NCBI RefSeq assembly: GCF_902713615.1
Contig: NW_024055665.1
Coordinates: forward strand, 248,001-294,976
Direction of reading: 5' to 3'
Length of the DNA: 46,976 nt
Origin: Scyliorhinus canicula
Lineage: Eukaryota
Each line of letters opens with the position of its first letter. Positions within the stretch are counted from its first letter, which is position 1. Below are positions 8,205-39,079 of this stretch, piece by piece. A model generated the notes under the pieces. The model made no database searches. It had not been told where the DNA came from and saw only the letters and a list, made by a program, of their open reading frames with translations. The position numbers and the translations under genes were made by a program.

Positions 8205-8216
8205 ATGACCAGAAGG

Positions 8217-8262
8217 ATGAGGTGGGCCATTTCTCTCAGTTTGTTGCTGACTTTCTTATCCC
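8217..8262 (+). CDS. IGHV: IgH leader exon (MRWAISLSLLLTFLS; alternative in-frame ATG at 8205)
   Basis: Hydrophobic signal peptide, phase-1 donor C|GTGAGT at 8263, 128-bp intron ending TTTTACAG at 8390; splicing restores the frame R-V-Q-S-D-V-V-L. Confidence 0.92.
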
Positions 8263-8390
8263 GTGAGTAGTTTTTATTGTCCAAGTCTCTCACTGTTACT
8301 GTCTCAGTGTTAGTCTCTCTCTGGAATGTTCCAGAGTCACCAATCATTTCACCAGCATTAATCCTCGGGCTTTTTGATATATTTTTACAG

Positions 8391-8695
8391 GTGTCCAGTC
8401 GGATGTTGTGTTGACTCAGCCAGAGGCAGAGACCGGGCGTCCCGGAGGCTCCCTGACACTGACCTGTAAAACCAGCGGCTTCAATCTTGGCAGCTACGAC
8501 ATGTACTGGGTCCGCCAGGTTCCCGGACAGGGGCTGGAGTGGCTGCTTTACCACTATAGTTCATCTAACAACAACTACGCCCCAGCAATTAAAGATCGAT
8601 TCACTGCGTCCAAAGACACTTCAAACAACATCTTCTCTTTGGCCATGACGAACCTGAAGACCGAAGACACCGCCATCTATTACTGTGCAAGAGGC
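8391..8695 (+). CDS. IGHV: Immunoglobulin heavy-chain V segment (shark IgM VH), unrearranged, open frame
   Basis: [22 protein letters not shown]...[12 protein letters not shown]...RFTASKD...[10 protein letters not shown]: both canonical Cys, the FR2 Trp and the YYC motif are intact. Confidence 0.98.
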
Positions 8696-8734
8696 CACAG
8701 TGAGAGGAACCAGGGCTGGACCCGCACAAGAACA
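8696..8734 (+). other. V 3' recombination signal sequence (23-RSS)
   Basis: CACAGTG (8696-8702), 23-bp spacer, ACAAGAACA (8726-8734). Confidence 0.95.
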
Positions 8735-8902
8735 GCTCGAGAGGGAATTCAGCAACTTGCACCTTAACCTGAAGGTCAGCACTTGATCCAAATCTAATAT
8801 TAATGTCAGGGGTCAGAACCCGACCACGAACCGCGTCTGACACAACTGAGACAGACAAATGTTCACAGTAAAACCTAACAAACCTACCGATATCATTTTG
8901 AC

Positions 8903-9101
8903 GAAAGGGAAAATGCTGGAAAATCTCAACAAGTCTGGGAGCATCTGTAGGGAGAGAAAGGAGCTAACTTGACTCTTTGTCAAAGCGTCACCGGACTCGA
9001 AACGTTAGCTCTTTTCTCTCCCTACAGATGCTGCCAGACTTGCTGAGATTTTCCAGCATTTTCCCTTTCGTTTCAGATTCCAGCATCCGCAGTAATTTGC
9101 T
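8903..9101. mobile_element. Palindromic insertion, probably Penelope-like retroelement derived, with 14-bp TSD
   Basis: Inverted arms 8902-8968 and 9004-9070 (67 bp, 3 mismatches); direct repeat GATATCATTTTGAC at 8889-8902 and 9102-9115. The Penelope assignment rests on recalled similarity of gactcgaaacgttagctc...cagatgctgccagacttgctgag. Confidence 0.8.
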
Positions 9102-9309
9102 GATATCATTTTGACTGTGTTTATATGTAATGTCTCAGTTTCACCAATTACTGACCTGAATATGATCCTTGTTTTAATATGTCTATAATTTGGGGCAGAG
9201 CTTTGTACATTGTGTTTTGTAAACGTTTGAATAAATAGTAAATTAGATCAGAAGTAAACGTGTATTTGAAGTGAATATTGAGCGGCAGGACTGAACAGAG
9301 AGTGAGTGC

Positions 9310-9337
9310 AGTTTTTGTGCGGGTGTCTGTCACTGTG
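9310..9337 (-). other. D 5' RSS (12-bp spacer)
   Basis: AGTTTTTGT (9310-9318), 12-bp spacer, CACTGTG (9331-9337). Confidence 0.95.
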
Positions 9338-9360
9338 ACTACAGCAGGGGATATACCTGG
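9338..9360 (+). CDS. IGHD: IgH diversity (D) segment, 23 nt ACTACAGCAGGGGATATACCTGG
   Basis: Bounded by two 12-RSS; all three forward frames are open (TTAGDIP, LQQGIYL, YSRGYTW). IGHD here is the diversity-segment symbol, not IgD. Confidence 0.93.
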
Positions 9361-9388
9361 CACAGCAGTTACTGTCAGTACAAAAAGC
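9361..9388 (+). other. D 3' RSS (12-bp spacer, non-consensus heptamer)
   Basis: CACAGCA (9361-9367), 12-bp spacer, ACAAAAAGC (9380-9388). Confidence 0.9.
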
Positions 9389-9716
9389 CCCTCAGCACTA
9401 ATTAACTGAGGCTAGCTTAGTGCTCGCTTTTACAATCCAACTTTATTCACAGTGTAGCATTATTTATGTCCAGCACTGACAAAATGACAATAATTAACAT
9501 GGGAAATCTGTGGCAATTATTCACTCATTAGTTAGTGATTTCAATAACATGTTCATGTGTTACTCTGCAATATAAAACATTAGCGTCATTTCTGAACAAC
9601 AAGCGACATCCACAAATGCAATTATAATTTAATGAAAATTCATTACAAGTTTACTTTGCCACTGGTTTGTGAAAATTTAAAATAATGGTGGATTTCTGTC
9701 TATTTTGTGTAGGTGC

Positions 9717-9754
9717 GGTTATTGTACGGAGCTGCCCAGGGATGTGACATTGTG
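9717..9754 (-). other. J 5' RSS (22-bp spacer)
   Basis: GGTTATTGT (9717-9725), 22-bp spacer, CATTGTG (9748-9754; CACAATG on the bottom strand). Confidence 0.9.
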
Positions 9755-9802
9755 CCGCCATGGACGACTGGGGACAAGGCACCATAGTGACGGTGACTGC
9801 AG
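9755..9802 (+). CDS. IGHJ: IgH joining (J) segment AMDDWGQGTIVTVTA
   Basis: WGxG motif with TGG at 9769; phase-1 donor G|GTAAG at 9803. Confidence 0.96.
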
Positions 9803-12603
9803 GTAAGAACCATTCCATTATTTATGAACTGTTTTACTTGAGTGATACTGTGTGGCTGGGTACTTTAAATACCTAACGCCTGTAAACAGTTTGGTATTTC
9901 TGCAATGTTTAATCTCAGTGACATCTGGTGGCTGCAGGTTTTACCACCTCCTGTACAAGTGTTAGAAATCGACCCAATATTCACAAAATATGCTGAAGCA
10001 TCAATGTCAATTTATTGAACACTTCAGGCTTATTGACAATGCTGATGATATTCTTCCATATTTCTGTGTGTTTTAATTGTTCATTCACTTGCTGAAAGGC
10101 GGATTTCGTGGGTTCTAGACTGAGATTTTCTTGAAATGCTGTTTGATTCTGTTGAATTGTAGATTTGAGCTGGTTCTCCATGAGACGAATTTCAGCCCCT
10201 CGGTGATTTAATTTGGTGTTTTTCTGCTCAGGAGATTCTGTCTGGGTGATTTTGAATAAGTAAAGTTTATGAAACGGTTCTGGCGTTTCTATGTTCTTTA
10301 TACTCGTTGATACTGAGCGGTTCCATGTTTTGTAATTGAATGAAAACAATACACGTGTTTGAAACTGCTGCACGATTTTAGGCAGAATACAGTCAGGATT
10401 TTAGAGTGCTTTTTAAAAGTGATGGTTGCAGATTAAACTAAGCCACAGTTTAAAATGCTCTTTCCAAACATAATTTGTTACTGCAATCACAGCCTGGCTT
10501 TTCTTCAGTGTCCCACCTTGGTGGGATTGATGGATGCAGCTTTATCTCTCCTTCCAACTGTTTAAATGCGTTTGAAATATGGTCCAATATGAATAAAATG
10601 TGGTAAAGTTTCAAAAATATTTTGGACATACCCCACATACTCACAGTGATATTACTGTTGTTTTGTATTTCTATTTAGTTTGATAATTCATACATTTGGT
10701 GGCGAACTGGTTTGCTAGATTCGATATTCAGATGTTTTTGAAATGTAACGTTTGATTCTGTTGAATGTAGAATTGAGCTGTTTCTCAATGAAACGGGTTC
10801 AGCCCTTACGATGATTTGGGGGTTTTCCTGCTGAGGAGATACTGTGTCCGGGTGACTTTGAATAAGTACAATTTGTGAAGCGGTTTTCTGTTTCTCTGTA
10901 GTTTCTGCATTGTTCAAACTGGGTGACATTGAGCAGTTACACGTTTTCTGGTTAAATGTAAAAAGGTTTGCGTGTTTTAATCTCCTTGAAATACAATTGT
11001 AGGGAGTAAACGCAGCAGGTTTCGAAAATAAAGAAAGGAATTAAAGATTTGATAGACATTTTTAAATTTAACATGGTGATAACTGATTAAACAAAACCAT
11101 GGCGTCATTAAGAACGCAATTCGTTACTGCAATCTGAAACTATTTAATTAAAACGTTTTCAAATTAGTGAGTAAAATTAATATAACTTAAATAATTATAA
11201 TGCTATGTTATAACCATATTATCCAAATATGTTATCATATTAATGTCATTAATCATCAATCGCCTTCCACCATTCTGCTGTGCTCTGCAAACCATTAATC
11301 AGTGCAACACTTAATGAAAACTACTGAGTCAGATCCTCTATATCACTGAAACATAATGAGAAAATGATGGAGAAATGTTCTTGTTCAATTTATGATTTAA
11401 TAAGAAATAAGCTTGAGGCTCAGATATAATCCATTCTTCTATTGTATAATTTGTTTTATTGTTATATTGTGTACAGCACAGCTCTGCGAGACAGGATGTT
11501 ATTATTTTTTGCACAGCTAATATTCTCCTTTTGTAATTAAATTAATCTCTTTGAATTTCGAGCTTTTACTGTCTCCAGCAATGAGCAGTACGAACATTTC
11601 TACAATTTAGATAAAATCATAAGAACAATTCCTTCACTTTCAGCGACTTCCACCTCTGAGAAACTCCTTATGATTAAAATAGAGACAACGACAACTGACG
11701 CTGAAGAGATAATATACGAGCTGCTGCACATAACTAATATAATAACCGGATACATAAATTGCCAAACTGCAATATAAAACTCCTACTTAAGTAACTGAAA
11801 ACGTAATCAGAGAAATAAAGAATTAAAATATGTCTTGAGCAACTGAACAGTGCTGTAGAATCAGTATGTTATTATTAAAACAGCTTCATAAATAATCACA
11901 AAATATTCCCAGCCTATAAACTTTTCCGGTCATGCTATTTTTCTTTAAGCAATATTTTCAAGAATAAAGTTAATCGAATTGCCTGAATGATTAAATCTCG
12001 GAAACACTTTTATTGATCACAAACTAACAAGGACTTTATTGTTAGATATATAGTTTCGAGTAACAACAGTTTATCAATTCGAGAGCACCGCTTTAAGAAA
12101 CAGATGATATATTACACATGTCTGAATTATTCCATCCGATAATTTGAAGTTTAATATTTAATTAACTCCAAATTATTTAGCAGATTTCAGGCAGCAACAG
12201 GTTTTGAATTACAGAGAACCATTTTTTATTATTTATGTTATAGAGTACAAATCAGCAGACAGGACAACTAATTGACAATTGGCAATAACTTGCAATGCGA
12301 CATTAGTACTAACTAATTCAACATAAATTAACTCCTACAAGAGTAATACACTGGCGTGCGATATCAAAGCTATTGGAGAATGTTTAATTGTACTGAAAAT
12401 AATTTAGAAAACAATACATTTATTTACTCAGGTTGAAGAGGTGGCCCGCCTCGATTGCTTTATTGATTATATTTAATTAGAAAATTGCATCAAATCAGGT
12501 CATCAGTTTCCAATGTGAATGTTTCCTGGTTTGTTTATTTCTTGGCAAACACTGGATCTCTGTCACGGACATTAAACACCCGTCAATCTGTTATATTCAA
12601 TGT

Positions 12604-13426
12604 GAACATAAGAACATAAGAACATAAGAACTAGGAGCAGGAGTAGGCCATCTGGCCCCTCGAGCCTGCTCCGCCATTCAATGAGATCATGGCTGATCTT
12701 TTGTGGACTCAGCTCCACTTTCCGGCCCGAACAACATAACCCTTAATCCCTTTATTCTTCAAAAAACTATCTATCTTTACCTTAAAACATGTAATGAAGG
12801 AGCCTCAACTGCTTCACTGGGCAAGGAATTCCATAGATTCACAACTCTTTGGGTGAAGAAGTTCCTCCTAAACTGAGTCCTAAATCTACTTCCCCTTATT
12901 TTGAGGCTATGTCCCCTAGTTTTGCTTTCACCCGCCAGTGGAAACAACCTGCCCGCATCTATCCTATCTATTCCCTTCATAATTTTAAATGTTTCTATAA
13001 GATCCCCCCTCATCCTTCTAAATTCCAACGAGTACAGTCCCAGTCTACTCAAACTCTCCTCATAATCCAACCCCTTCAGCTCTGGGATTAACCTAGTGAA
13101 TCTCCTCTGCACACCCTCCAGTGCCAGTACGTCCTTTCTCAAGTAAGGAGACCAAAACTGAACACAGTACTCCAGGTGTGGCCTCACTAACACCTTATAC
13201 AATTGCAACATAACCTCCCTAGTCTTAAACTCCATCCCTCTATCAATGAAGGACAAAATTCCATTTGCCTTCTTAATCACCTGTTGCACCTGTAAACCAA
13301 CCTTCTGTGACTCATGCACTAACACACCCAAGTCTCTCTGCACAGCGGCATGCTTTAGTATTTTATCGTTTAAATAATAGTCCCGTTTGCTGTTATTCCT
13401 ACCAAAATGGATAACCTCACATTTGT
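12604..13426 (-). mobile_element. 5'-truncated CR1-clade LINE (RT C-terminus, 3' UTR, (TTCTTATG)n tail)
   Basis: ORF 12777-13343 with VRPHLEYCVQFWSP, RRMRGDLIETFKIMKG and FFTQRVVNLWNSLP; AACATAAG x3 at 12605-12628 is the reverse-complement tail. Confidence 0.95.
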
Positions 13427-13629
13427 CTCAGTGATAATACATTGTGCCCAGTTCAGACAGACAGGAGAAATAGCTGAAAGGCGAAGGGAGTTTTGAAATT
13501 AATTTCAGAGAGGTTATTGATTTGTTATTGTCGTAAGTTGACCATTTATCAATTAGAATCGAGCAGTTTGCATGATTCATTCCCCCGTGTTTCAGAATGA
13601 AATTTGACAGACTAAATAATCTCTCATCG

Positions 13630-15410
13630 TCACACTGTTTCTCCCTCACACACTCCCTCTCTCCCACAAACCCGCACTATTCCTCAAACACACAGTCTCT
13701 CTCTCACACACACACAGTCACACACACGCACTGCCTCACACACTCAGTCTCTTACATACTCTCTGTCACCAACTTTATCTCTGTCCAACTCTCCCTCACA
13801 CAGACTGTCACTCACTCTCTCACATGCACAGGCACATTATCCCTCTCTCTCTTTCACAGGCAATCTCCCTCTCACACTCTCTCACACACACTCTCTTACA
13901 CGCTTTACCAATCTCAGTCACATTAAAAATCATTCGCAGACACACATACACACACATGCACTCTCGCACACATTATCTCTTGCACACACGCTCGTTCACA
14001 CACATGCTCTGTCAGACACATCTCTCACACACAAAATGCTCTCTCACATACAGGCTCTCTCACACATTCGCTCTCTCACACATACACTCTCTCACGCATA
14101 CGCCCTCTCTCTCACACTCGCCCTGACATGCATGGTCTCTCGCACGCACACTCTCTCACGCTCACACACACGCTCTCTCACACACACACTCTCTCAAACA
14201 CACGGCCTCTCGCACAGGCATGCTCTCTTGTACTCCTGCTCTCTCACACATATATCCTCTCTTTCATACATGCTCTCTTATGCACATGAGCTCTGATACT
14301 CACACTCTTGCACACACTCCCTCACTCACTCACTCACACTCATGTTTGCTGACACACATGCTCTCTCACGCACATGCTTTCTCACACACATGCTCTGTTG
14401 CGTACATGCTCTCTCACACACATGTACTCTCCCACACGTGTGTTCTCACACACACGCTCTCTCACACACACACTCTCTCAAACACACGGCCTCTCACACA
14501 CACACGCTCTCTTGTACTCTTGCTCTCTCACACATATATCCTCTCTTTCATACATGCTCTCTTATGCACATGAGCTCTGATACTCACACTCTCGCACACA
14601 CTCTCTCACTCACTCACTCACACTCATGTTCGCTGACACACATGCTCTCTCACGCACATGCTTTCTCACACACATGCTCTGTTGCGTACATGCTCTCTCA
14701 CACACATGTACTCTCCCACACGTGTGTTCTCACACACACGCTCTCTCACACACTTATCTCTCACACTCACGCTCTCTTGCACACACGGTCCCTCACACAC
14801 ATGCCCTCTCACTCACATGCTCTCTCATTCACTCACTCTCTCACACACCCATGCTCTCTCATTCTCCCTTGCACACACACTCTCTCACACACATGCTCTC
14901 TGGTACTCATGCACTCTCGCACACATGCTCTCTCACACATGTTCTCTTGCACACATGCTGTCTCGTTCACACTTTCTCTCACACACATGCTCTCTCACAC
15001 ATGCTCTCTCACACATATCCTCTCTTGCACACATGCTCTCACACATATGCTCTGTCACACACTCACACACACACACGCTCTCACACACATGATGTCTGGC
15101 ACACATGCTATCTCAAACACAGTTTTCCGCATACAGTCTCTCTCCTGTGGACACTATTTTGCTCCCTCACACACACACATCCTCTCGCTCGCACAAATAC
15201 ACACAATGGCGCTCTCACACACAGATATTCTCTGACACACAGAGATACTCTCACACATACACACACTCACACATATACTCTCTCTCCCTCTCTCTTGATC
15301 CATCTCTCGCATGCATGCAGCCACATACATAGACACAAACACATGTTCTCAGACCCATACCCACACTCTCCCTCTCTCTCACACACACTCAGACACGCAC
15401 ACACTTTCAG
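13630..15410. repeat. CA/CT-rich low-complexity tract containing a 284-bp tandem duplication
   Basis: Mixed (CA)n/(CT)n with CACATGCTCTCT-type units; the block near 14164-14448 recurs at 14449-14733, and ORFs 14342 and 14626 start with identical peptide. Confidence 0.9.
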
Positions 15411-15442
15411 ATACACAGATGAGAGCGACTGAATCTAGCATC

Positions 15443-15758
15443 AATAATAAACAAAATAATCTTTATTATTGTCACAAGTGGGCTTACATTAACACTGCAA
15501 TGAAGGTACTGTGAAAATCCCCGACATGCCACACTCTGGCGCCTGTTCGGGTACACCGGGGAAGAATTCAGAATCTCCAATCCATCTACCAGGATGTTTT
15601 TCAGGACTTGTGGGAGGAAACCGGAGCACCCGGAGGAATTCCACGTAGACACGGGGAGAACCTGCAGACTCCACACAGGCAATGTCCCTAGTGGGAATCG
15701 AACCCGGATCCCTGGTGTTGTGAAGCGACAGTGCTAACCACTGTGCTACAGTGCCGCC
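15443..15758 (-). mobile_element. tRNA-derived SINE (full length)
   Basis: Reverse-complement A box (gtgctaaccactgtgc) and B box (gggaatcgaacc), shared core and (TTA)-rich tail. Confidence 0.88.
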
Positions 15759-15829
15759 AAATCAAGGCATAATTTAAACGTGTGGCCTCGGGGAGCCCAA
15801 CCAAAGAATGAATGGATGGGAATCAGGAG

Positions 15830-16695
15830 AACAATCTCCGCTGGTTGGAGTCATAACCAGCACCAAGGTAGATGGATTCCATTGCTGGAGGTTAATCATC
15901 TCAATTCCAGGACATCACTGCGAGACTTCTTCAGGGTAGTGTCCTCGGACAAACCATCAATGCTTATTCATCAATGACCTTTTCATCATAATGTCTGAAC
16001 TGGGTTGTTCTCAGATGATTGCACCAAGCTCAGCACAATTTGCAACTGTGCAGTCACTGAATAAATCTACGTGTAAATAAAGCAACATGGAGACTACATC
16101 AGGTTCTGGCTGACAAGTGGTAAGTAACAGTCAAGTCACCCAATCGAAGGCAAAGCCCACCTCCAGTAAGAACGGTCTAACCACTGCCCCTTGACATTCA
16201 ATGGCATTACCATCATTGAATCCCCACTCGAAACCTCCTGGGGGTTCACATGGACCAGAAAGTGATCTGGACGAGTCATATAAATTTTGAGGCCAGAAGA
16301 ACAGATCAAAGGTGAGTAATCCTGCGGTGAAAAACTAATCTCCTGACTCCCCAAAGCCTGTCCACCATCTAAAGATCCGCTGCAGAAACTCATCATGTCT
16401 CCTTAGGCAGCACCTTCCAAACCCATGACAGCGGCCATCTGGACAAGGACAGCAGACACATCGGAACATCACCAAGTGGAAGCTGAACTCCAAGTCACTC
16501 AGCATCATGACTATAAAGTATGTCACCGTTCCTTCAGTGCCGCTGGTTCAAAACCATGTATGTAACTGACTTGGGGAAACACCACATGGACTGCAATGGT
16601 TAAAGAAGGAAGCTCACCACCTTCTCAAAGGCAATGAGGGATGGAAAATAAATGCTGGCCCAGCCAGAGACGTCTACATCACAAGAATGAATAAA
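15830..16695 (+). mobile_element. Degenerate CR1-like LINE (RT to 3' end), probable partner of the DeuSINE-like element
   Basis: cttcagggtagtgtcctcgga...ttcatcaatgacctt corresponds to the PQGSVLGP...FINDL RT motif; 3' end ggcaatgagggatggaaaataaatgctggcccagcc...gaatgaataaa. Confidence 0.7.
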
Positions 16696-17069
16696 CACAA
16701 CAACACTGTCCGTGATACAATATGACAGAAAAATCCCATTTGCAAAATGAAAATCCATTAAGTTGCAGGAATGATCATTGTCCCAGTCCTAAATTTTTTT
16801 GTGGAAAATGAAATTACATCGGCATTAAAGCAGCTACCCAGTGATCTACACTGCTGTCTGACTTTACAAAGCCGGTGTTACTGAAAGCTGATCAATGTGG
16901 AGAATCAGGACAGGATGGATGGAGAGAAGAGGAGGAGGTGGGGGTGGTGGAGCCGAATGGAGGAGCCCCCAGCTCGGCTGTGGACAACAGGCATCGGAAA
17001 GCTGAGCCTGAGCAGAAAATCATCCAGAGAAATATCGTCCTGATGGGCTGGGAGCATCTGGGAATGGTC

Positions 17070-19930
17070 ACTCACCCACGCTCACTCACTCACTCACTCT
17101 CACCTGTCTTCAATCATTCACTTACCCTCACTCACTCACCATCACTCATTGACCCTCACTCACCCATCCTCAATGGCAAACCTTTCCTCAACCACCCTCA
17201 CATACACCCTCACACACACGGTCACTCACTGACCCTCACTCACTCACCCTCCCTGACACATTCTCACTCACCCACCATCACTCACCCACCCTCCCTGACA
17301 CAAACTCACTCACCCACCCTCCCTGACAGACTCTCACACACCCACCCTCCCTGACACACACTCTCTCACCCACCCTCCCTGACACACTCTCTCACCCACC
17401 CTACCTGACACACACTCTCTCACCTACCCTCCCTCACACACACACACTCACCCACCCTCCGTGACACACTCTCACTCACCCACCCTCCCTGACACACACA
17501 CACTCACCCACCCTCCCTGACACACACTCACTCACCCACCCTCCCTGACAGACTCTCACTCACCCACCCTCCCTGACACACACTCTCTCACCCACCCTCC
17601 CTGACACACTCTCTCACCCACCCTACCTGACACACACTCTCTCACCTACCCTCCCTGACACACACACTCACCCACCCTCCGTGACACACTCTCACTCACC
17701 CATCCTCCACGACACACACACTCTCACCCACCCTCCCTGATACAATTTCACTCACCCACACTCCCTGACACCCTCACTCACCCACTCTCCCTGACACACT
17801 CTCACTCCCCCATCCTCCCCCTCACTCACACACCCTCCCTGACACACTCTCACTCCCCCATCCTCCCCCTCACTCACCCACCCTCCCTGACACACACACA
17901 CTCAACCACCCTCCCTGACACAATCTCACTCCCCCATCCTCCCCCTCACTCCCCCACCCTCCCTGACACACACACACTCACCCACCCTTCCTGCCACACT
18001 CTCACTCACCCACCCTCCCTGACACACTCTCACTCACCCACTCTCTCTGTTACACACTCACTCACCCACCCTCCCTGACACACACTCACTCACCCACACT
18101 CCCTGACTCACTCTCACTCACCCACCCTCGGTGACACACCCTCACTCACACACCCTCCCTGACACACTCACTGACCCACATTCCCTGACACAGACTCACT
18201 GACTCACCCTCCCTGACACACTCTCACCCCCGTGACACATTCTCACATACCCACCCCCGCCCTGACACACACACTCTCACCCACCCTCCCTGACACAGCC
18301 TTACTCACCCACCTTCCCTGACAGACTCACACTCACTCACCCTCCCTGACACACTCTCACTCACCCACCCTCCCTGACACACTCTCACTCATCCACCCTC
18401 CCTGACACACACTCACTCACCCACCTTCCCTGACACACACTCACTCATCCACCCTCCCTGACACACACTCACCCACCCTCCCTGACAGACACTCATTCAC
18501 CCACCCTCCCTGACACACACTCACTCACCCTCGCTAACACACACTCACTCACCCACCCTCCCTGACACACTCTCACTCACCCACCCTCCCTGACACACAC
18601 TCACTCACCCACCCTCCCTGACACGCACTCACCCCCACCCTCCCTGTCAGACACTCATTCACCCACCCTCCCTGACACACACTCACTCACCCACCCTCCC
18701 TGACACACTCTCACTCACCCACCCTCCCTGACACACTCACTCACCCTCACACACACACTCACCCAGCCTCATTCAGCAACACTCGCCCTGATTGACTCAC
18801 CCTTTCAAGCCCAACCTAACTCGTTCACCCTCACTCACACACTCTCACCCACTCATCCTCAAACTAACGCCCATCGTCACTCATTCTCACCCACTCTCAT
18901 TCAGGCTCTCACCCTCACTCAGTCACCCACCCACACTTACTCCGCCACCCTCACACACCCTGACTCACACACCGTCACTCACCCACCCTCACACACCGTC
19001 ATTCACCCACTCTCACACACCCTCACCCACCCACCCTCACTCACTCCCCACCCTCACGCTCACTGAATCACTCACCCACACTCACACACCCACACACCCT
19101 CAATCAGTAACCCACCCTCACCGACACATTCACTCCCCCCTCAATCAAATACCACCACCCACCCTAACTCGCCCACACTCACTCACTCACCCTCCAACCC
19201 ACCATCGCTCTCGAATCTTCCCTCACACATCTACAATGACTCATTCATACTCACTCACCCAGCCTCACTCATTCACCCTCACACTCGCACCCATCCTCTT
19301 TCACACACCTTCACTCACAGATCCTTACCCTTCCTCACTTACGCACCCTCACTCATTCACATTCCCTCATACACCCTTATTGAGCCATCCTCACCAGACG
19401 CACCCAACCTGTCACCCACTATCACTCACCCTCACTCACCCACCCATCCTCACACACCCTCATTTACCCACACCCATCCCCTCACTCACCCTGACTCACT
19501 CAACCACCATCACACACCCACCCTCGCGCACCACCCACACTCATTCTCTGCCACTCACACTACCTCACTCACCCTCGCACACCCACTAATTCTCAATAAC
19601 GCACCTCACTCACTGAGCAACAGTTACATCCTCACTGACCCGCACTCACTCATGCATCCTCACTCAATCATCCTCACTCACCGACCCTCATTCACCCAAC
19701 CTCGTTCACTCACCTTCATTGACTCTCACTACACAACCTCACTCACCCAGCGGCACTCATTCCCTGCGTCTCACTCACTCTCCCTCACCCATCCTGGCTC
19801 ATTCGTGCTCGGTGACATACCCTCACACATTTACCCTCACTCAGTCATTCACCCTGATCTGCCACTCATCAACACTCAGACATCCTCAATCAGCCAACTC
19901 ACTCACACACACTCACTCTCCTACCCTCAC
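17070..19930. repeat. C-rich minisatellite (unit about 25-30 bp, CACTCACCCACCCTCCCTGACA[CA]n), homogeneous 17230-18750 then degenerate
   Basis: Dozens of CCCACCCTCCCTGACAC copies are directly visible; the top strand is nearly G-free. Confidence 0.95.
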
Positions 19931-20065
19931 TCAGTTACTCACTCATCCTCTCTCACTGATGCTCAGGAAATCGGCAAGGGAGCGTCTGCAGCGAGAGGAA
20001 TAGAGAACTGGAGCGAAACTGATGTCCAGTGGCGCCCGAATGTGTCTGCATAACACGGGAGTGGC

Positions 20066-21500
20066 GAGAGCCGGGGGAAGGAGCCGGAGGAAGGAGCCGA
20101 GAGCCAGGGGAAGGAGCCGAGAGCCGGGGGAAGGCGCAGAGAGACGGATGAATGAGCCGAGAGTCGGGGGAAGGAGCAGAGAGTCGGGGGAAGGCGCCGA
20201 GAGCCGAGGGGAGGAGTAGAGAGCCGGGGGAAGGGGCAGAGAGCCGGGGGGAGGAGCAGAGAGCCGGAGGAAAGTGCGGAGAGCCGGGGGAAGGAGCCGA
20301 GCGCCGGGGGAAGGCGCAGAGAGACGGAGGAATGAGCCGAGAGTCGGGGGAAGGAGCCGAGAGCCGAGGGAAGGCGCCGAGAGCCGAGGGGAGGAGTAGA
20401 GAGCCGGAGAAAGGTGCGGAGAGCCGGGGGAAAGCGCCGAGAGCCGGGGGAAGGAGCAGAGAGCCGGGGGAAGGTGCCGAGAGCCGGGGGAAGGAGCAGC
20501 GAGCCGGGGGATGAGAGCAAAGAGGCGGCGAAAAGGCAGAGTTGGGAGGAAAGCACAGAGATGCAGGGGAATGGGCAGAGATGCAGGGGAATGGGCAGAG
20601 ATGCAGGTGAAATGGCAGAGATGCAGGGGAATGGGCAGAGATGCAGGGGAATGGGCAGAGAGCCGTAGAAAAGGACAGAGGAAGGAAGGAAGTGGAGAGA
20701 GCAAGGGAAAGGCGGGGGACGGGTAGTGGGAGTGCAAGGAGCCAGGGGAAGTGCAGGGAGGGGGAGGGGTGCGAGGGGTGGGGGTGCGAGTGCAGGGGGC
20801 CGGGGCAAGGCGCAGAGAGCCGGGGAAGCAGCAGAGAGCCGGGGGAAGGAGCAGAGAGCTGAGGGAAGGTGCAGAGAGCCGGGGGAAGGAGCAGAGAGCC
20901 GGGGAAGGGGCAGAGAGCCGGGGGAAGGAGCAGAGCGCCGGGGAAGGAGCAGAGAGCCGGAGGAAAGTGCAGAGAGCCGGAGGAAAGTGTAGAGAGCCGG
21001 AGGAAAGTGTAGAGAGCCGGGGGAAGGAGCAGAGAGCCGGAGGAAGGAGCAGAGAGCCGGGGGAAGGAGCAGAGCGCCGGGGAAGGAGCAGAGAGCCGGA
21101 GGAAAGTGCAGAGAGCAGGAGAAAAGTGTAGAGAGCCGGGGGGAGGAGCAGAGAGCCGGGGGGAAGGAGCGGAGAGCCGGAGAAAGGAGCAGGGAGCCAG
21201 GGGAAGGCGCAGAGAGCCGGGGACAGTGCAGAGAGCCGGGGGGAGGCATAGAGAGCCGGGGGAAGGAGCAGAGAGCCGGGGACGGTGCAGAGAGCCGGGG
21301 GAAGGCGCAGAGAGCCGGGGGGAGAGTGCAGAGAGGCGTGGGAAGGAGCAGAGAGCCGGGGGAAGGAGCAGAGAGCCGGCGTAGTGCAGAGAGCCTGAGG
21401 AAGGCGCAGAGAGCCGGGGGAAGGCGCAGAGAGCCGGGGGAAAGTGCAGAGAGCCGGGGACCGGGGGAAGTGGCAGAGAGCCAGGGGAAGGAGCAGAGAA
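20066..21500. repeat. G/purine-rich 20-bp tandem array (GAGCCGGGGGAAGGAGCAGA), roughly 70 units, degenerate tail to about 21780
   Basis: Unit directly visible; includes a sub-array AGAGATGCAGGGGAATGGGC at about 20557-20660. Confidence 0.95.
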
Positions 21501-22232
21501 CCGGGGAAAGGTACAGAGAGCTGGCGCAAGTGCATAGAGCCGGACGAAAGTCCATAGAGTGGGCGATAAGCCATAAGAATCGGGGTAAAGCTCACAGTCC
21601 TGGCGAAATGTTCAAAAAGCCCGCGGAAAGTGCCAGGAACCGGGAAAAGCCCAAAGAACTGGGGAATGTGCAGCGGACATGGGCAAAGCACAACGAGCAG
21701 GAAGAAAATTCAGAGCCCAAAGTGCAGAGATGCGGAGGAAAGCGCAGAGAGCCGTGGAAAAGAGTAGAGAGCTAAACGATAGTGAAGGGACCAGGAGGAA
21801 GGTACAGAAATCCAGCGGGGACGGCAGAGAGATGGGGGAACGCTCAGAGAGCGCGGGGCGGGGTGGGGGGGGGGGGGGGTTGCAGACAGCCCGGTCTCAG
21901 TGGCAGGCAGAATGTAGGGTTAACACCACGATCAGCACAGCCAGGATCTTACTGAATGGGGAGGAAGCTGGACGGACCGAATGGTCGCCTCCCACTGTTA
22001 ATGTGCATGATCCTAAAATTAGAGAATGTTGCAATTACTCAAATGTAGAGTTTTATTGTAATTATATAAAGGTGCATTCGGAAGGTGTTTTTGAAGCAAA
22101 GCAACTATTCTCTGGTTTGGGGAGTGGGGGTAGTGAGGTGGAGAGAGGAGGGGGCATCAGTCAGTTTGTACAAAGGGAATTTCCCAAAACTGCAATGATA
22201 CAAATGAAGAGACATCCTTTGTAAGACAAATT

Positions 22233-23618
22233 GATTGTGACGTACACAGCTCAGTTAGGTGGATTGTGACGTACACAGCTCAGTTAGCTGGATTGTGACG
22301 TACACGGCTCAGTTAGTTGGATTGTAATGTACACAGCTCAGTTAGCTGGATTGTGACGTACACAGCTCAATGAGCTGGATTGTGACGTACACAGCTCAGT
22401 TAGCTGGATTATGACGTACAAAGCTCAGTTAGCTGGATTGTGACGTACACAGCTCAGTTAGCTGGATTGTGACGTACACAGCTCAGTTAGCTGGATTGTG
22501 ACGTACACAGCTCAGTTAGCTGGATTGTGACGTACACAGCTCAGTTTGCTGGATTGTGACGTACACAGCTCAGTTAGCTGGATTGTGACGTACACAGCTC
22601 AGTTAGCTGGTCTGTGACGTACACAGCTGTTAGCTGGATTGTGACGTACACAGCTCAGTTAGCTGGATTGTGACGTACACGGCTCAGTTAGTTGGATTGT
22701 GATGTACACAGCTCAGTTAGCTGGATTCTGACGTACCCAGCTCAGTGAGCTGGATTGTGACGTACACAGCTCAGTCAGCTGGTTTATGACGTACATAGCT
22801 CAGTTACATGGATTGTGACGTACACAGCTCAGTTAGCTGGATTGTGACGTACATAGCTCAGTTAGCTGGTTTGTGACGTACATAGCTCAGTTAGCTGGAT
22901 TGTGACGTACCCAGCTCAGTTAGCTGGTTTGTGACGTACACAGCTCAGTTAGCTGGATTGTGACGTACACAGCTCAGTTAGTTGGATTGTGACGTACACA
23001 GCTCAGTTAGCTGGATTGTGACGTACACAGCTCAGTTAGCTGGGTTGTGACGTACACAGCTCAGTTAGCTGGATTGTGACGTACACAGCTCAGTTAGCTG
23101 GATTGTGACGTACACAGCTCAGTTTGCTGGATTGTGACGTACACAGCTCAGTTAGCTGGATTGTGACGTACACAGCTCAGTTAGCTGGTCTGTGACGTAC
23201 ACAGCTGTTAGCTGGATTGTGACGTACACAGCTCAGTTGGCTGGATTGTGACGTACACAGCTGTTAGCTGGATTGTGACGGACACAGCTCAGTTAGCTGG
23301 ATTGTGACGTACACAGCTCAGTTAGCTGGATTGTGACGTACATTGCTCAGTTAGCTGGTCTGTGACGTACACAGCTGTTAGCTGGATTGTGACGTACACA
23401 GCTCAGTTAGTTGGATTGTGACGTACACAGCTCAGTTAGCTGGATTGTGACGTACACAGCTCAGTTAGCTGGATTGTGACGGACATAGCTCAGTTAGCTG
23501 GATTGTGACGGACACAGCTCAGTTAGCTCGATTGTGACGTACACAGCTCAGTTAGCTGGATTGTGACGTAGACAGCTCAGTTAGCTGGATTGTGACGTAC
23601 ACAGCTCAGTTAGCTGGA
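22233..23618. repeat. 29-bp tandem array (AGCTGGATTGTGACGTACACAGCTCAGTT), about 48 copies
   Basis: Period of 29 measured (tgacgtacac at 22441 and 22470); occasional 27-bp variants. Confidence 0.98.
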
Positions 23619-23800
23619 CGGCTGGTTCATGACGAAGAGCGATCCCAACAGCACGGATTCAATTGCTGCACCGGCTGAGGTTATTCATGAAGACCCCCAT
23701 TCTCAACCTTGCCCCTCGTTTGATGTGTGGTGACCCTCAAGTTAAATCACCACAGTCAGTTCTCAAAGGGAAAGAACAGTCTCCGGGACTATGGCCTCAT
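23603..23800 (+). mobile_element. tRNA-derived SINE whose head is the last unit of the 29-bp array
   Basis: agctcagttagctggacggctgg...ggctgaggttattcatgaag...ttctcaaccttgcccctcg...gtgaccctcaagttaaatca aligns by eye with the independent copy at 43823-44040. Confidence 0.85.
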
Positions 23801-24122
23801 TTGCATTTTATATTACATGGTGGCTGAAATAATGGAGAAAACTCTCTGCTCCTCTCTTTCAATTCAATGAAAGTTACACCATTCAGATTACATCAAAATG
23901 TGTTTTTTTGGATGGAGACGGAGAAAGAGGTGAGTTTCTGAAGAAGGGACAAAAAGTAGTGATTCCGAACGATAGAACTGACAGAAGATTCAATGTGGAT
24001 GTGGGATTTAATCGGTAAATGTTAGGATAAAATCATAGTTCTAGTCAAATTATGAAATGCTTGGTTACTTATAAATTACAAATACCAGAGTCTAACTTGT
24101 TGAATGGGCCATTCTCCCCCAG

Positions 24123-24422
24123 TGACACCGACTCCGCCCACTCTCTACAGCCTGGTCTCCTCCTGTCAGCAACACAACACCCACGGCTCCGTGACCTTCG
24201 GCTGTTTGGCGATGGACTACTCCCCAGAAATCACCAGCCTTACCTGGAAGAAAGATGGGCAGCTGATCACCACTGGAGTTAAGAAATACCCATCAGTAAA
24301 AACCCAGAAGGGAACCTACACCCTGAGCAGCCAGTTAACCATCACCGAGTCAGAGGGGGAATGCAGCAAAATCAACTGTGAGGTTCAACACAGCGTCTCA
24401 GACAAGAGCATTGGAATGGAAT
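24123..24422 (+). CDS. IGHM: IgM Cmu1 exon
   Basis: Acceptor TCTCCCCCAG at 24122; (V)[16 protein letters not shown]...[17 protein letters not shown]...NCEVQH...GME; donor T|GTAAGT at 24423; phase 1 matches J. Confidence 0.96.
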
Positions 24423-24631
24423 GTAAGTGTTGTGGAACCTGTGAGAAATAGAAAACCTATGATGACCTTGTATAGGGTCTTGGATAGAACTCATTTGTAA
24501 TACTCGGCAAATTCCTGATCCCTGGAAAATCCAGCTTAGTGTCTATTGACCACAAACATTTTTTTAAGTATATGAACTCATTTTGTTTATCAATTTCTTC
24601 TGCACGAAATATCTAATTGTGTTTCTTGAAG

Positions 24632-24940
24632 GTCCCAGAATTTATGCTCCAAATGTTCTCCTCACCGTGAGTTCCAGTGAAGAAATCACAAGACAGAAAT
24701 TTGCAACCATCGTCTGTTCAATTAACGATTTCCAGCCAAATTCAATCACGGTGAAGTGGCTGAAGAATGGACAACCCATGAGTTCAGGAATTGTCACCTC
24801 TCCCGCCTGTGAAGTGAACGGGAACTTCTCGGCGAGCAGTCGGCTGACAGTCTCCGCTGGGGAATGGTTCAGCAAAGCGGTCTTTACCTGCCAGGTCACT
24901 CATCAAGAGGTCACCCAAAATCACAACATCACCGCGTCTG
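24632..24940 (+). CDS. IGHM: IgM Cmu2 exon
   Basis: Acceptor TTCTTGAAG at 24631; (C)PRIYAPNV...[10 protein letters not shown]...VKWLKNG...FTCQVTH...NITAS; donor G|GTAAG at 24941. Confidence 0.96.
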
Positions 24941-25387
24941 GTAAGAGATCTAAACAGAGGAAACAATAAATTATCCTGCATTCTGATGTTAATCCAAATC
25001 AGGAATGTACTGAAGTTTGTACAAAGCACATAATAACTTCTAATTTACTGCCATGTAGTTTGTGTTTCATTCTGATGTAAGGGCTGCATTAGGGTTGCTC
25101 ACCATTCAGGATATTACCAGAACAGCAAAGAATGTTTCCACTACTTTGAAATCATTTAGTGAGTGAGGTGGAATTGATATCAGCTTTATTCCGAAACAGC
25201 TGATCATATTTCAGAGGCAGTGGGTGGCATGAAACCTTTATTGTTTCGGGTGAAAGTGTTGGAAAGTTCATCCAACCTATTTATAAATGAGCATTCATGA
25301 CTGCGCTCCAGAGATCAGGAATTATAAATCGCATTGGGAATGCTGCAATACTGATTCATTAAAATGATACCGGGGCTAAACGATTTT

Positions 25388-25712
25388 CACAATAGTGGTT
25401 AGCACTGAGGCCTCACCGTGCCTGGGACCCGGTTCAATACTGACGGCGGGTGACTGTGTGGAGTTTACACCTCCTCCCCGTCTCTGCACGGGGTTCCTCC
25501 AGGTGCTTTGGTTTCCTCCCGCAGGCAAATATGTGCAGGTTAGGTGAATTGGTCATGCTAAATTAACGCTGAACGTCCAATGATTAGGTGGGGTTGTGAG
25601 GCTACAGGGATAGGGTGGGGGAATTGTCCCAGGTAGAGTGCTCTTTCGCGGGTCGGTGCAGACTCCATGGGCCGAATGGTCCTCTTCTGCACTGTAGTGA
25701 TCTATGATTCCT
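25388..25712 (+). mobile_element. HE1-like tRNA-derived SINE (degenerate)
   Basis: agtggttagcactg head, ggttcaat B box, CR1-type 3' end atgggccgaatggtcctcttctgcactgtagtgatctatg. Confidence 0.8.
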
Positions 25713-25885
25713 TAATAGTTTTCACAGAACACGCTGGTTTTCTATTGTATATCGAAGATTAAAGGCGGTCTGTCGGGGTTGATATTTTGAAGTTGCTTTA
25801 TTCCCAATTAGAGAGTGAAGGCTGAATCCTGCTGTCCTGATTCTGAAGATGAAACGTGGGTTAATTTTCATGTTTTCATTCACAG

Positions 25886-26194
25886 ATCCTTACGCTTGCA
25901 CTGTTGCCTCAGTAACAATACTGCCACCGCCAATAGAACAGGTCTTACTGGAGGCGACTGTAACCTTAACCTGCGTCATTTCGAATGGTCCTTATGGAGT
26001 CAACGTGTCCTGGAGTGAAGCGAAGAAGCCGCTGAAATCAGAGATTGCAGACGAGCCTGGGGCAGATATTGAGAGCGTGCTCAGCAAATTAAACATCTCG
26101 ACACAAGCGTGGCTGAGTGGGGCTGTGTTTAACTGTGTGGCGAGCCATCAGGACCTGCCAACTCCTTTAAGAATTTCAATCCACAAAAAAATAG
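25886..26194 (+). CDS. IGHM: IgM Cmu3 exon
   Basis: Acceptor TTCACAG at 25885; (D)[15 protein letters not shown]...TLTCVIS...VSW...[13 protein letters not shown]...KKI; donor G|GTGAG at 26195. Confidence 0.96.
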
Positions 26195-26411
26195 GTGAGC
26201 GGTGAGACTGAAGCAATAAGTCAGTCATTGTGTCTATTTCTAGTGTCAGTGCAGCGGTCAGTATTTAGCATTCAGTGTATTTATGGTCCATTCTGATTGG
26301 TAATTCCACTAACTAAATACTCTGGGCCCTTAGAGTTTAAGGGGGAAATTGATATGCAGACGAATGAACAATGAATTGAAAACAGCGATGTTGAGTTTAG
26401 ATGGAGCGAGA

Positions 26412-27700
26412 CCATAGTCCACAGGACTTAGGCGCAGATGTAACCCATTGGGCCCATCAACACTGGTCCAGCCTTCAGTGAGGTCATGACTGATCTGCTG
26501 TGATTATCTTCAACTCCTCTTTCCAGCCTTATCCCCATATCCCTTGACGCCTTGACTGATTTAGAATATGTCTCCCTCAACCTTGAACGTACTCGCCGAC
26601 CCAGAATCTACAGCCCCCCTGCGTTAAATAACTCCACAGCTTCACTACCCTCTGAGAGAGGAAATTCCTGCTCATCTCTGTCTGAAATGGGCGAACCCTC
26701 ACTTTGTGATCCTGCACTGCTCCGAGACGCTCCCACAGGGGTAAACAACCTCTCAGCGTCTATACAAAGAAACTCCCCGAGAATCTTGTCCCAATTAGGT
26801 CGCTTTATTCCTCTGAACTCCAAGAAGTACAAACCAGCAAAGTTACCCTCAGCTCATAAGAAAATGCCTCCATACTCGGGATCAACCTCATGATCCTTCT
26901 CTGGACTGCCTTCAAAACCAATCTGTCTTCCTCAGATAAGGGCAACAAAACTATTCAAAGTGTATCAGGTGTAGTCTAACTAAATAATAATAATTGCTTA
27001 CTGTCGCAAGTAGGCTTCAATGAAGTTACTGTGAAAAGCCCCTAGTCGCCACATTGCGGCGCCTGTTCGTGGAGTCCGGTACGGGAATGCCTTGTATAGT
27101 TTTAGCCAGACTGCCCCATGTTTATATTCTATTCCCTTTGAAATAAATGTCAACATTCAATTTGTCTCCATATTACCTGCAGAATTTGCTTTTTGTGGTT
27201 TCTGCACGAGGACCCCCAATTCCCCCGTTACTTCAGCTTTCTCCAGTCTTTCTCCAGCTAAATAATATTCCGCTATGTTCTTCCTCCTCCCAAAGTGTGT
27301 AACCTCACATTCTCTGTCCCTCTGTGGATTTTCTGTAATCCTCACCACTTGCCTTTCTACCTATTTTTGCCATCTGTAAACATGGGAATAGTACATTCAT
27401 TTATTAAACACAGTTTTGAAATTCATGTATATTACATCTATTGCCCCCCACCCCTCCCCCTCTCTAGCCTTCGCGTTATCACCTCGAATAAGGGCAATAA
27501 AGTTTTCAGGCATGAGTTACCCTTCATGAAGCCGTGCTGACTCTGTTTGATTATGTTATGTATTTCGAAATGCTCAGCTATTGGATCTGTTATAATGGAC
27601 TCGAACCGTTTTCCACGGACAGATGTTAAGGTCGCTGGCCTAATAGTTACCTGATTTTGACTCCCTCCCCTTTTGAATAAGGCAGTTTTCCAATCCTCTG
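26412..27700 (-). mobile_element. Degenerate CR1-like LINE 3' portion, interrupted by a SINE fragment at about 26983-27088
   Basis: Reverse-strand CR1 3' end (cttcactaccctctgagagaggaaattcc), RT remnants (ORF 27157-27348 EVTHFGRRKN...ELGVLVQK); the internal SINE piece ttactgtgaaaagcccctagtcgccacatt is shared with 31706 and 34692. Confidence 0.7.
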
Positions 27701-27996
27701 GGAGTAAGGTGGGAGGAGCCTGGTGTGGAGTTTATACACCAGCGCAGAACAGTTGGGCCGAATGGCCTGTTTCCTTGCTGTACACTTTCTGAAACTTTCG
27801 AATCCAATATCCGTAAATTCTCAGGGAAAAGGTTGTGTCCACCTCTGCTCCGAGCTGGGAAACCGGACAGATCCCAAAGTGGAAAATGGAAACCTTTAAA
27901 ATCCAACACAAAACACATTTCTCTCATATCTAACCCGCGGTTCCATTGTCTCCGGAATTCCCCATTTTATTGACATTTATTGTACATTTTCTGCAG

Positions 27997-28388
27997 ATCC
28001 CAATCCACGGGAACCGTCTGTCTCTGTCCTCCTGCCCTCGGCTGAAGACGTCTCCGCTCAGAGATTCGTCTCCCTCAGCTGCTTAGTGAGAGGTTTCTCC
28101 CCCCGAGAGATCTTCGTCAAGTGGACCGTCAATGACAAGCCGGTGAATCCCGGGAACTACAAGAACACCGAGGTGATGGCGGAGAACGGCAATAGCTCCT
28201 TCTTCATGTACAGCCTGTTATCCATTGCAGCGAAGGAGTGGGCCAGCGGCGCTTCTTACTCCTGTGTGGTGGGACATGAAGCCATCGCCTTGAAGATCAT
28301 CAACAGAACGGTTGATAAATCCAGCGGTAAACCCAGTTTTGTGAACATTTCCCTCGCTCTGATGGATACCATTAATTCATGTCAATGA
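27997..28388 (+). CDS. IGHM: IgM Cmu4 exon with secretory tailpiece
   Basis: Acceptor TTTTCTGCAG at 27996; (D)[13 protein letters not shown]...[18 protein letters not shown]...YSCVVGHE...DKSS|[20 protein letters not shown]; N-glycan site NIS and penultimate Cys; internal donor G|GTAAA at 28327 for the membrane form. Confidence 0.97.
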
Positions 28389-30510: not shown

Positions 30511-31009
30511 CGAGGAAAAGTGGAGGAAGGTGATGAGTGGACTCTCTGTATCTCCACCTCCTCAGCAGGTGGAAACCCAAAGAGAATTTGTTCAGCTGAC
30601 CAGAGAGAGGGAGATTATTCACTCCAAAGAGAAAATGCTGGAAAATCTCAGCAGATTCCAGCATCCGTAGGAATTTGTTTTTATCCAGAGATGATTAACT
30701 CACTGTCCTCCCAATCCCCAAGCAGCGAGTTTGAGAGCGGACGGGTCTATACTCTGAGCATTCTGTCACTGACATTACAAGTCGGCTTGTAGTTTACTGC
30801 CTGAAGATGTGAAAAGACCACCATGATAAAGATGTTCTTTAAATATCTATTTATGCAACAGAATTTTACTTTTTTTTGCACTCTAGTTCCTCTTATCCGT
30901 ATGCTAAAACTGATTCCCCATAATCCAAATCCAGACTGGTGATGGAATTCTCCCTGGATTTTCATTGTTCTCTCCTAAGGCACCTCCTTGTATTTTTGCA
31001 TTAGGTCAC

Positions 31010-33050: not shown

Positions 33051-33212
33051 TACAGAGATCGGTTGGTGAGTGTCACGAACTCTACAGTAGCTATGCAATG
33101 AAAAATATATTAGAGAATGAATGATCAGATAAAGAAAATTAAATGAGAATATTAACAATGTATCCTGGATTAATAAACAACTTAATATATTTATTGGGCT
33201 CTATCCTCGTAG

Positions 33213-33340
33213 ATACCACAGACCACACCTGGACTGAAGACGATGAGGATGATAACAGGAACATCTGGACAACCGCTTCCACATTCATCACACTGTTCGT
33301 CCTGAGCATGTCCTACAGCGCTGCAGTCACTCTGGTGAAG
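33213..33340 (+). CDS. IGHM: IgM transmembrane exon TM1
   Basis: Acceptor CCTCGTAG at 33212; (D)TTDHTWTEDDEDDNRNIWTTASTFITLFVLSMSYSAAVTLVK with acidic spacer and CART-type TM; phase-0 donor |GTGAGA at 33341. Confidence 0.95.
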
Positions 33341-33478
33341 GTGAGAAGATTCAATCCACTCACCCTTCAAACCGGCAGAAGCCTTTTTAAAACCATAAAT
33401 GCTTGATTGATTAAAAACTCTAACATCAATGTCCCAGATCATAAACATCTGCTTCATCATTTTATCTCTGTTTTACAG

Positions 33479-38250: not shown

Positions 38251-39079
38251 GATAGTATGGACAGAGATAAGCGTGAGTGAGCATCGTAAACTGCTATTGT
38301 ATCGGGGTGTTCTGGGTCTCAGAGTTTTAACCATGCAGTTAATTGTCAGGGATGCAGTATAATAAACCCTGAACAAAGCAAATGTGTGTGTGTGAGAAGC
38401 ATCTGAAGTACCAGGAACCAGCTGAACCAGCAGAGCTGAATGTCTCCCAGTGCAGCCACAGGACTGAACTTATTCCAGCTTCCAAGTCCCCCTGAGAACC
38501 AACCTCCTGGCTCTTCATCTACAAGAAGCTTCAGAGCCTCGTGAGAATTATATATTTCTAAAAACGCTTCACTCCAACTAAAGGATCAGCTAAACAAGAA
38601 GACAACTGGCCTGCAGCGATATAAAGATTGGAGGCTACGTTCCATTTTCATCATTACAGTTTCAACTTGACCTTTACCTAATTTCTGTTTGTGTCAGTGA
38701 GTGTGAAAGAGACGAGAGACTGAGATGTTCAACATCCAGGGAAATAGTGTGATAATAAATAATGTTCCATCCGTTAAAAATCACCAGTAAGCCTGTTGCT
38801 GAAATGTATTTTAAATAAAGAAATATCACCCTAATGTTAAGAAAATATCACACACACATCCTGATAATGAACTGGAAAGGACCACGAAATGTAATCAAAC
38901 GTTGTATAACCCACTTCAGGTAGCTATACAGAGGCTGCAGCCTCTCACACTGAATGTATACGGATCCATTGACACCTCCAGGCAACAAACATCCATCAGC
39001 TTCAGCCTGGGAGTGGGTGAATTTTTAAAAAACCAGTTCGCGCACTAGGACCCGGCTGGGAACAGAAACCTTCAGGTCT

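Follow-up and report, generated by a model that had tools for sequence, protein, structure and literature searches.

A single-D IgM heavy-chain cluster in Scyliorhinus canicula, probably formed by a germline D1-D2 joint

Introduction

Partly germline-joined IgM clusters were reportedly first described by Kokubu et al. in 1988, in the horn shark. The germline-joined IgM layouts given in reviews are VD-J, VD-DJ and VDJ (PMC5192425, PMC4279169). Germline-joined shark Ig genes have been traced to split genes that underwent RAG-like joining in which TdT was little active (PMC2193156). A fusion confined to D segments is known from type III IgNAR of the nurse shark (V-D1D2-D3-J), in which D1 and D2 are joined in the germline, one rearrangement fewer is made and CDR3 is restricted (PMC4622739). 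In the nurse shark, V-DD-J is a frequent one-step somatic intermediate of thymocytes, found also in B cells (PMC2435157). As a germline layout for IgM, V-DD-J is absent from the layouts of the reviews and from the searchable literature, where it appears only as a somatic product; the 1988 original lay outside this search.

Here we describe an IgM cluster found in 46,976 nucleotides of Scyliorhinus canicula DNA, the whole of which is called the window below. In this cluster D1 and D2 were probably joined by a V(D)J-type deletion, and the joint is most likely inherited, a reading that we hold with fairly high confidence. By the literature searched, the germline layout in which D1 and D2 alone are joined (V-DD-J) is new for IgM; the pre-joining of shark Ig genes is itself already known.

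Materials and Methods

All DNA comparators were orectolobiform: L001-L005 and L007 are from the bamboo shark Chiloscyllium punctatum, and L006 is from the whale shark. Two of them only, L002 and L007, have a D1-D2 spacer, and they come from a different shark order from the window species.

Spacers were compared by Smith-Waterman local alignment against 200 shuffles each, with the RSSs excluded, with lenient scoring, and with the insertion described below removed from the V-D spacer. A first flank test, with RSSs included and harsh scoring, gave weak z scores of 1-6 and is superseded by these RSS-free lenient tests. BLAST at +1/-1 proved unstable for the V-D1 match, which was present in plus-strand-only runs and lost in some others; for this reason the V-D1 homology is based on Smith-Waterman scores against shuffles.

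Results

On its + strand the window holds a single complete IgM heavy-chain cluster, made up of a V and its 23-RSS, one D, a J and its 22-RSS, four exons for Cmu with a secretory tail, and one for TM:

8217..8262, + strand: leader exon, with its ATG at 8217, another ATG in frame upstream of it at 8205, and a GT donor at 8263 (read from sequence)
8391..8695, + strand: intact VH exon (VQSDVVLTQ...YYCARG), ending TGTGCAAGAGGC (Pfam V-set, E 3e-21)
8696..8734, + strand: V 23-RSS, CACAGTG / 23 / ACAAGAACA (sequence and RSS scan)
9310..9337, + strand: D 5' 12-RSS, AGTTTTTGT / 12 / CACTGTG, with 1 mismatch to consensus and collinear with the D1 5' RSS of L002
9338..9360, + strand: D, 23 nt, ACTACAGCAGGGGATATACCTGG, open in all three frames
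9361..9388, + strand: D 3' 12-RSS, CACAGCA / 12 / ACAAAAAGC, homologous to the D2 3' RSS
9717..9754, + strand: J 22-RSS, GGTTATTGT / 22 / CATTGTG (sequence and RSS scan)
9755..9802, + strand: JH (AMDDWGQGTIVTVTA) with WGQGT and a GT donor at 9803 (sequence and alignment to bamboo shark)
24104..28388, + strand: Cmu1-Cmu4 and secretory tail (ORFs 24104-24451, 24583-24969, 25849-26205 and 28086-28388, whose coordinates are ORF limits rather than mapped exon borders)
33143..33406, + strand: ORF with the membrane (TM1) exon (...TTASTFITLFVLSMSYSAAVTLVKV), from the ORF list

The leader exon encodes MRWAISLSLLLTFLS, resembling the VH leaders of horn shark and bamboo shark. Identity of the VH is 84-86% to Scyliorhinus torazame, 87% to Mustelus asterias, 78% to horn shark and 74% to bamboo shark, carcharhiniform V genes being the nearest relatives (84-87%). 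The first base of the V heptamer is 8696, a small correction to the initial annotation. The Cmu ORFs encode four C1-set domains (E 4e-14 to 2e-8), with Cmu1 resembling Mustelus IgM and the last ORF ending in an IgM secretory tail, and the ORF at 33143..33406 (+) presumably contains the IgM TM exon, its membrane segment being of the typical mu kind. One VH with a split leader and a 23-RSS is thus present as in a shark minilocus, as is a JH with a 22/23-RSS followed on the same strand by Cmu1-4, secretory tail and TM exons. In place of the two Ds of a minilocus (12-D1-22/23 and 12-D2-12), there is one 12/12 D between V and J.

Repeat arrays stretch the J-Cmu1 intron to ~14.3 kb. From about 12000 to 23800 the window consists of skewed low-complexity arrays within this intron, C-rich at 12-20 kb and G-rich at 20-22 kb. 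Further ORFs lie at 35939-38284 (-), 12777-13343 (-), 42643-43356 (+) and 46428-46871 (-); by their translations they resemble a LINE-type reverse transcriptase (781 aa) accompanied by another fragment, an array of C2H2 zinc fingers, and a transmembrane envelope protein of retroviral type.

The cluster has a single D. The initial annotation had reported one 23-nt D with a 12-RSS on either side, and this is what a consensus scan picks out: allowing up to 3 mismatches, the 12-RSS consensus has 3 matches in the 47-kb window against 0.98 expected, and the convergent pair around D, 23 nt apart, makes up two of them, with no other D between V and J. A relaxed RSS scan found neither a second D nor a 22/23-RSS in 8735-9309. 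In 9389-9716 the same scan found no second D and one weak RSS candidate only, at 9448-9487, which has a perfect heptamer CACAGTG, a spacer of 24 and the nonamer ACAAAATGA, matching at 6/9 positions. This candidate is probably a chance match, since the relaxed scan yields about 0.8 comparable matches per kb of window, both strands counted; it could function as a cryptic RSS. It aligns with the ordinary D2-J spacer of bamboo shark, and with its spacer of 24 and poor nonamer it was rejected as a relic of the D1 3' RSS.

Two bamboo shark clusters, L002 and L007, are canonical V-D1-D2-J, with a V 23-RSS, a D1 3' 22-RSS, a 12/12 D2 and a J 23-RSS, and so bear out the layout given in the initial annotation (V-23, 12-D1-22, 12-D2-12, 22/23-J). 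Their D1 is ATACTACAGTGGGT in L002 and ATGCGACAGCGGGT in L007; the D2 of L007 is ATATAACTGGGGTGA (L007 11204-11218). D1 is the same in nurse shark and bamboo shark, and the split D1/D2 arrangement is conserved among Orectolobiformes (nurse shark, bamboo shark). Germline VDD-J is the layout of bamboo shark L004, L005 and both clusters of L003, which lie head to head; whale shark L006 is fully VDJ-joined.

Several peculiarities of the comparators were noted. The V heptamer of L007 reads CGCAGCG and is probably dead, and the J of the second L003 cluster has CGQG in place of WGQG. At L002 11289-11330, D2 coding bases (ATATAGCTG) adjoin a conserved spacer block, and the true D2 3' RSS is absent together with about 190 bp, either because the germline lost this stretch at D2 or because the assembly is faulty there. 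The block itself, CATGTGTTACTCTGCAATATAAAACA, belongs to the D2-J spacer (window 9553-9580, L002 11303-11330) and is nearly invariant between the window and all bamboo shark clusters. It resembles a decayed heptamer-12-nonamer, and may represent a relic RSS or else have a regulatory role.

The DNA on the two sides of the window D was compared with the spacers of these clusters:

8735..9309, + strand: V-D spacer, homologous to the V-D1 spacer and broken by a foldback insertion (BLAST and Smith-Waterman)
9389..9716, + strand: D-J spacer, homologous to the D2-J spacer (BLAST, Smith-Waterman and alignment)
8903..9103, no strand assigned: MITE-like foldback element, inserted between direct repeats of 14 bp (GATATCATTTTGAC) at 8889-8902 and 9104-9117

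Against the V-D1 spacer, the V-D spacer scored z 16.6 (L002) and 12.2 (L007), with 0/200 shuffles; against the D1-D2 spacer it scored 0.9 (L002) and -1.1 (L007), and against D2-J or DD-J spacers 0.2-2.6. BLAST placed 8698-8883 on L002 10486-10670 (E 4e-16) and 9123-9308 on L002 10706-10891 (E 4e-13). The D-J spacer gave z 31 (L002), 26 (L003), 28 (L005) and 36 (L007) against D2-J or DD-J spacers, about 0 against the V-D1 spacer, and 0.6 and 1.5 against the D1-D2 spacers. Its alignment to the comparators is unbroken over the whole stretch between the D 3' RSS and J, and BLAST matched 9350-9810 to L007 11203-11668 (E 4e-46) and 9358-9775 to L003 from the DD 3' RSS through J (E 1e-24).

The D1-D2 spacers of L002 and L007, searched on both strands of the whole window by the stricter BLAST, gave no match at E <= 0.05, and the best weak match of a looser search (E 0.018) lay outside the cluster. 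By these same searches, the window holds no excised D1-D2 spacer reinserted elsewhere. The alignment to paralogues that the initial annotation had called for, made here with two canonical clusters of another order, thus returned a D1-type 5' flank, a D2-type 3' flank and an absent D1-D2 spacer.

The arms of the foldback (8901-8968 and 9004-9071) are 68 nt long and 96% complementary. It is absent from the equivalent site in L002, where the two L002 matches leave window 8884-9122 as a gap. Its 14-bp repeats are a target-site duplication, and the insertion is separate from the D fusion. The whole V-J stretch is accounted for, because V-D1 homology and the foldback together explain the length of the V-D spacer. 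Relatives of the foldback occur at about 30626-30671 in the window, at 12280-12356 in whale shark L006 and at 15144-15236 in bamboo shark L004.

The D itself can be read as two parts:

9338..9350, + strand: D1-derived part, ACTACAG + CAGGGG, with the exact 7-mer ACTACAG of the nurse shark and bamboo shark D1 ATACTACAGTGGGT
9351..9360, + strand: D2-derived part, ATATACCTGG, 9/10 identical to the first 10 nt of the L007 D2 ATATAACTGGGGTGA

The D cores named in the initial annotation agree with the published nurse shark D1, ATACTACAGTGGGT, and with D2, which is ACATACTGGGATAG or one of its variants (PMC2435157 Figs S1, S11). Its division of the D into a D1 core and a D2 core also holds, with ACTACAG exact at the start and the first 10 nt of D2 matched at 9/10 at the end. 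From 9351 the match to D2 begins at D2 base one (ATATACCTGG vs ATATAACTGG), and the long BLAST alignment to L007 opens one base ahead of D2, at window 9350 = L007 11203. Against the L002 D2 ATATAGCTG, the D2-derived part is identical at 8/9. The probability that a random 23-mer has both the D1 and the D2 features is about 2e-6.

The six bases CAGGGG in the middle of the D are G-rich, like TdT additions. They may be a diverged D1 3' end (TGGGT in other sharks) or junctional bases, and because they fit either, the joint is not divisible into D1, P/N and D2; the undivided DD core is GCAGGGGATATACC. On the D2 side the 5' end is complete, which leaves no more than some 6 bases without an assignment, the D1s used for comparison being orectolobiform. 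At its uncut 3' end the D2-derived part is 4-5 nt shorter than orectolobiform D2, which we assume to be a lineage-specific difference; this shortened end adjoins an intact RSS.

That RSS, the D 3' RSS, can be aligned position by position to CACTGCA / 12 / ACAAAAACA, as found in bamboo shark L003-L005 and L007. Translation of it and its flank, AQQLLSVQKAPQH, matches the read-through tail AQQLLSIQKAPQH of an S. torazame VD-J gene model, which marks it as the ordinary D2 3' RSS of catshark-like IgM clusters. In its nonamer and part of its spacer, the D 5' RSS resembles the D2 5' RSS of bamboo shark no less than the degenerate D1 5' RSS, and the putative D1 identity of this RSS is a matter of its position, not of its own sequence.

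Discussion

The flank types, the missing D1-D2 spacer, and a D in which an entire D2 5' end comes after the D1 core all support the D1-D2 fusion proposed in the initial annotation. The D is best read as a D1-D2 coding joint from which both inner RSSs have been removed, which would make this a V-DD-J cluster. The deletion would have run between the D1 3' 22-RSS and the D2 5' 12-RSS, taking both inner RSSs and the D1-D2 spacer, about 350 bp, and leaving a 23-nt DD coding block that keeps the outer 12-RSS of D1 and the outer 12-RSS of D2. As in other joined genes, two neighbouring segments have lost a single RSS pair along with the spacer that separated them, and both coding ends are kept. Because exactly one RSS pair is lost while the coding cores and outer RSSs are kept, we infer a RAG coding joint (22-RSS with 12-RSS), presumably made in a germ cell rather than in a lymphocyte, as for other germline-joined shark Ig genes. 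Related sharks also carry germline DD joints, those of bamboo shark L003, L004 and L005 (VDD-J).

The same join is made somatically, and the assembly might have taken in the V-DD-J intermediate of a lymphocyte clone, a joint that is not inherited. V-DD-J is common among the thymocytes of the nurse shark and is also found in its B cells (PMC2435157), and CAGGGG might be a G-rich N region. Two nurse shark somatic DD joints, however, have 6 and 9 added bases along with trimming (PMC2435157), whereas the window D2 5' end is untrimmed and about 6 bases at most are unassigned. Since an assembly consensus needs a majority of reads, and lymphocyte clones should be rare in the usual source tissues, a somatic joint seems improbable here. 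An inherited deletion need not involve RAG, and replication slippage or end joining could have removed everything from the D1 3' RSS through the D2 5' RSS. Indels are common in these spacers, as in the 9-20 bp differences near the D1 5' RSS among L002, L007 and the window, and about 190 bp were lost after D2 in L002. A random deletion of about 400 bp would, however, hardly remove a whole RSS pair and keep the coding cores, with both break points no more than a few bases away from the borders between heptamer and coding end, and we regard this origin as very unlikely.

Two further readings dispense with a joint. D1 may have been lost, and the 23-nt D may simply be a D2 that is long or has expanded and has 12/12 RSSs of its own. 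In favour of this, D2 natively carries a 12-RSS on both sides, the nonamer and some of the spacer of the 5' RSS resemble the bamboo shark D2 5' RSS, and D1 and D2 are similar to each other, the first 13 nt of the D aligning loosely to D2 (8/13, alignment read by eye). A D that matches a lone D2 together with its flanks, an outcome raised in the initial annotation, is nevertheless not what was found, because the DNA upstream is V-D1 spacer, reaching right to the 5' RSS with no D1-D2 spacer ahead of the D, and because the D begins with the exact D1 7-mer, D2 homology starting only at 9351; we give a long D2 very little credence. The other reading is an ancestral, never-split D, from the like of which D1 and D2 elsewhere arose. 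The flank test alone cannot separate a fusion from such a pre-duplication state, and a V-domain tree, meant to polarise split and fused states, had no resolved branching and gave no polarity. Against an unsplit D, the clusters of sharks and skates as a rule have two Ds (PMC2435157), and the window V is nearest to carcharhiniform V genes (84-87%) and is not basal, both of which make it unlikely; further, D1 is identical between nurse shark and bamboo shark, and both paralogous cores stand in tandem, as in a join of two Ds. We consider an ancestral single D extremely unlikely, and no known one-D lineage, the other source suggested beforehand for a D of this kind, was found in the searchable literature. 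Unequal crossing-over between D1 and D2 was rejected, as the expected hybrid is ~14 nt and the observed D is a 23-nt tandem of both cores.

On the preferred reading, an inherited D1-D2 joint, the cluster should still be able to rearrange. The 12/23 rule is obeyed at both remaining steps, V-23 to 12-DD and DD-12 to 22-J, and the V, J and C parts are open, so that the cluster looks intact; it should therefore assemble VDJ in two steps, not three. CDR3 would then have a germline-fixed core of up to 7 residues (TTAGDIP, LQQGIYL or YSRGYTW, by frame), with trimming and N addition confined to two junctions. On this reading the cluster would be expressed and would affect the CDR3 repertoire.

A more speculative proposal, which we advance only tentatively and think doubtful, is that V-DD-J forms an inherited, duplicated IgM family here, kept for a semi-invariant CDR3 that is quickly assembled from the fixed DD core. 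If true, this family would be the IgM equivalent of both IgNAR type III and the germline-joined IgM1gj of neonates, and its joints could be dated against canonical paralogues, giving the rate of RAG action in shark germ cells.

Germline-joined shark Ig genes are a natural record of RAG outside lymphocytes and a source of innate-like, pre-set antibody specificities. A joint of D to D only is the cleanest such record: because the partners are short and conserved and the outer RSSs survive, it could be dissected (trimming, P and N) and dated with a paralogue from the same species. It also offers a natural repertoire experiment, in which a cluster that lacks one junction and has a fixed CDR3 core of 7 residues stands beside three-junction clusters in the same animal. 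The general picture of shark Ig genetics is unchanged, with one more configuration added to a list known since 1988.

The window cluster shares with VD-J (= VD1D2-J), VD-DJ and VDJ clusters the loss of one or more RSS pairs and spacers, in its own case from DNA that is probably inherited, with the outer RSSs kept. It differs from them in that V is still free and only D1 and D2 are joined, leaving two rearrangement steps and a 12/12 D. With the VDD-J clusters of bamboo shark L003-L005 it has in common the D2 3' RSS and the D2-J spacer.

IgNAR type III of the nurse shark is alike in having a fusion of D to D only, made in the germline as the window joint probably was, which lowers the number of rearrangement events by one. 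IgNAR, however, has its own V and C and three Ds, whereas the window has a VH, four C1-set Cmu domains, an IgM tail and no further D; an IgNAR V, IgNAR constant exons and a third D, by which type III genes are recognised, are all lacking from the window cluster. Early-life expression is known for type III (PMC4622739).

The somatic V-DD-J of nurse shark has the identical configuration and comes from the same RSS pair, D1 3' with D2 5' (PMC2435157). It is made cell by cell, with 6-9 added bases and trimming, whereas the window joint is an assembly consensus with probably little or no addition. In its RSS logic (V-23, 12-D-12, 22/23-J) the fused cluster is like the IgH of bony vertebrates (tetrapods, teleosts), a likeness that is a by-product, because the shark D2 is already 12/12; bony-vertebrate IgH has arrays of segments, whereas the window has a minilocus with one segment each of V, D and J.
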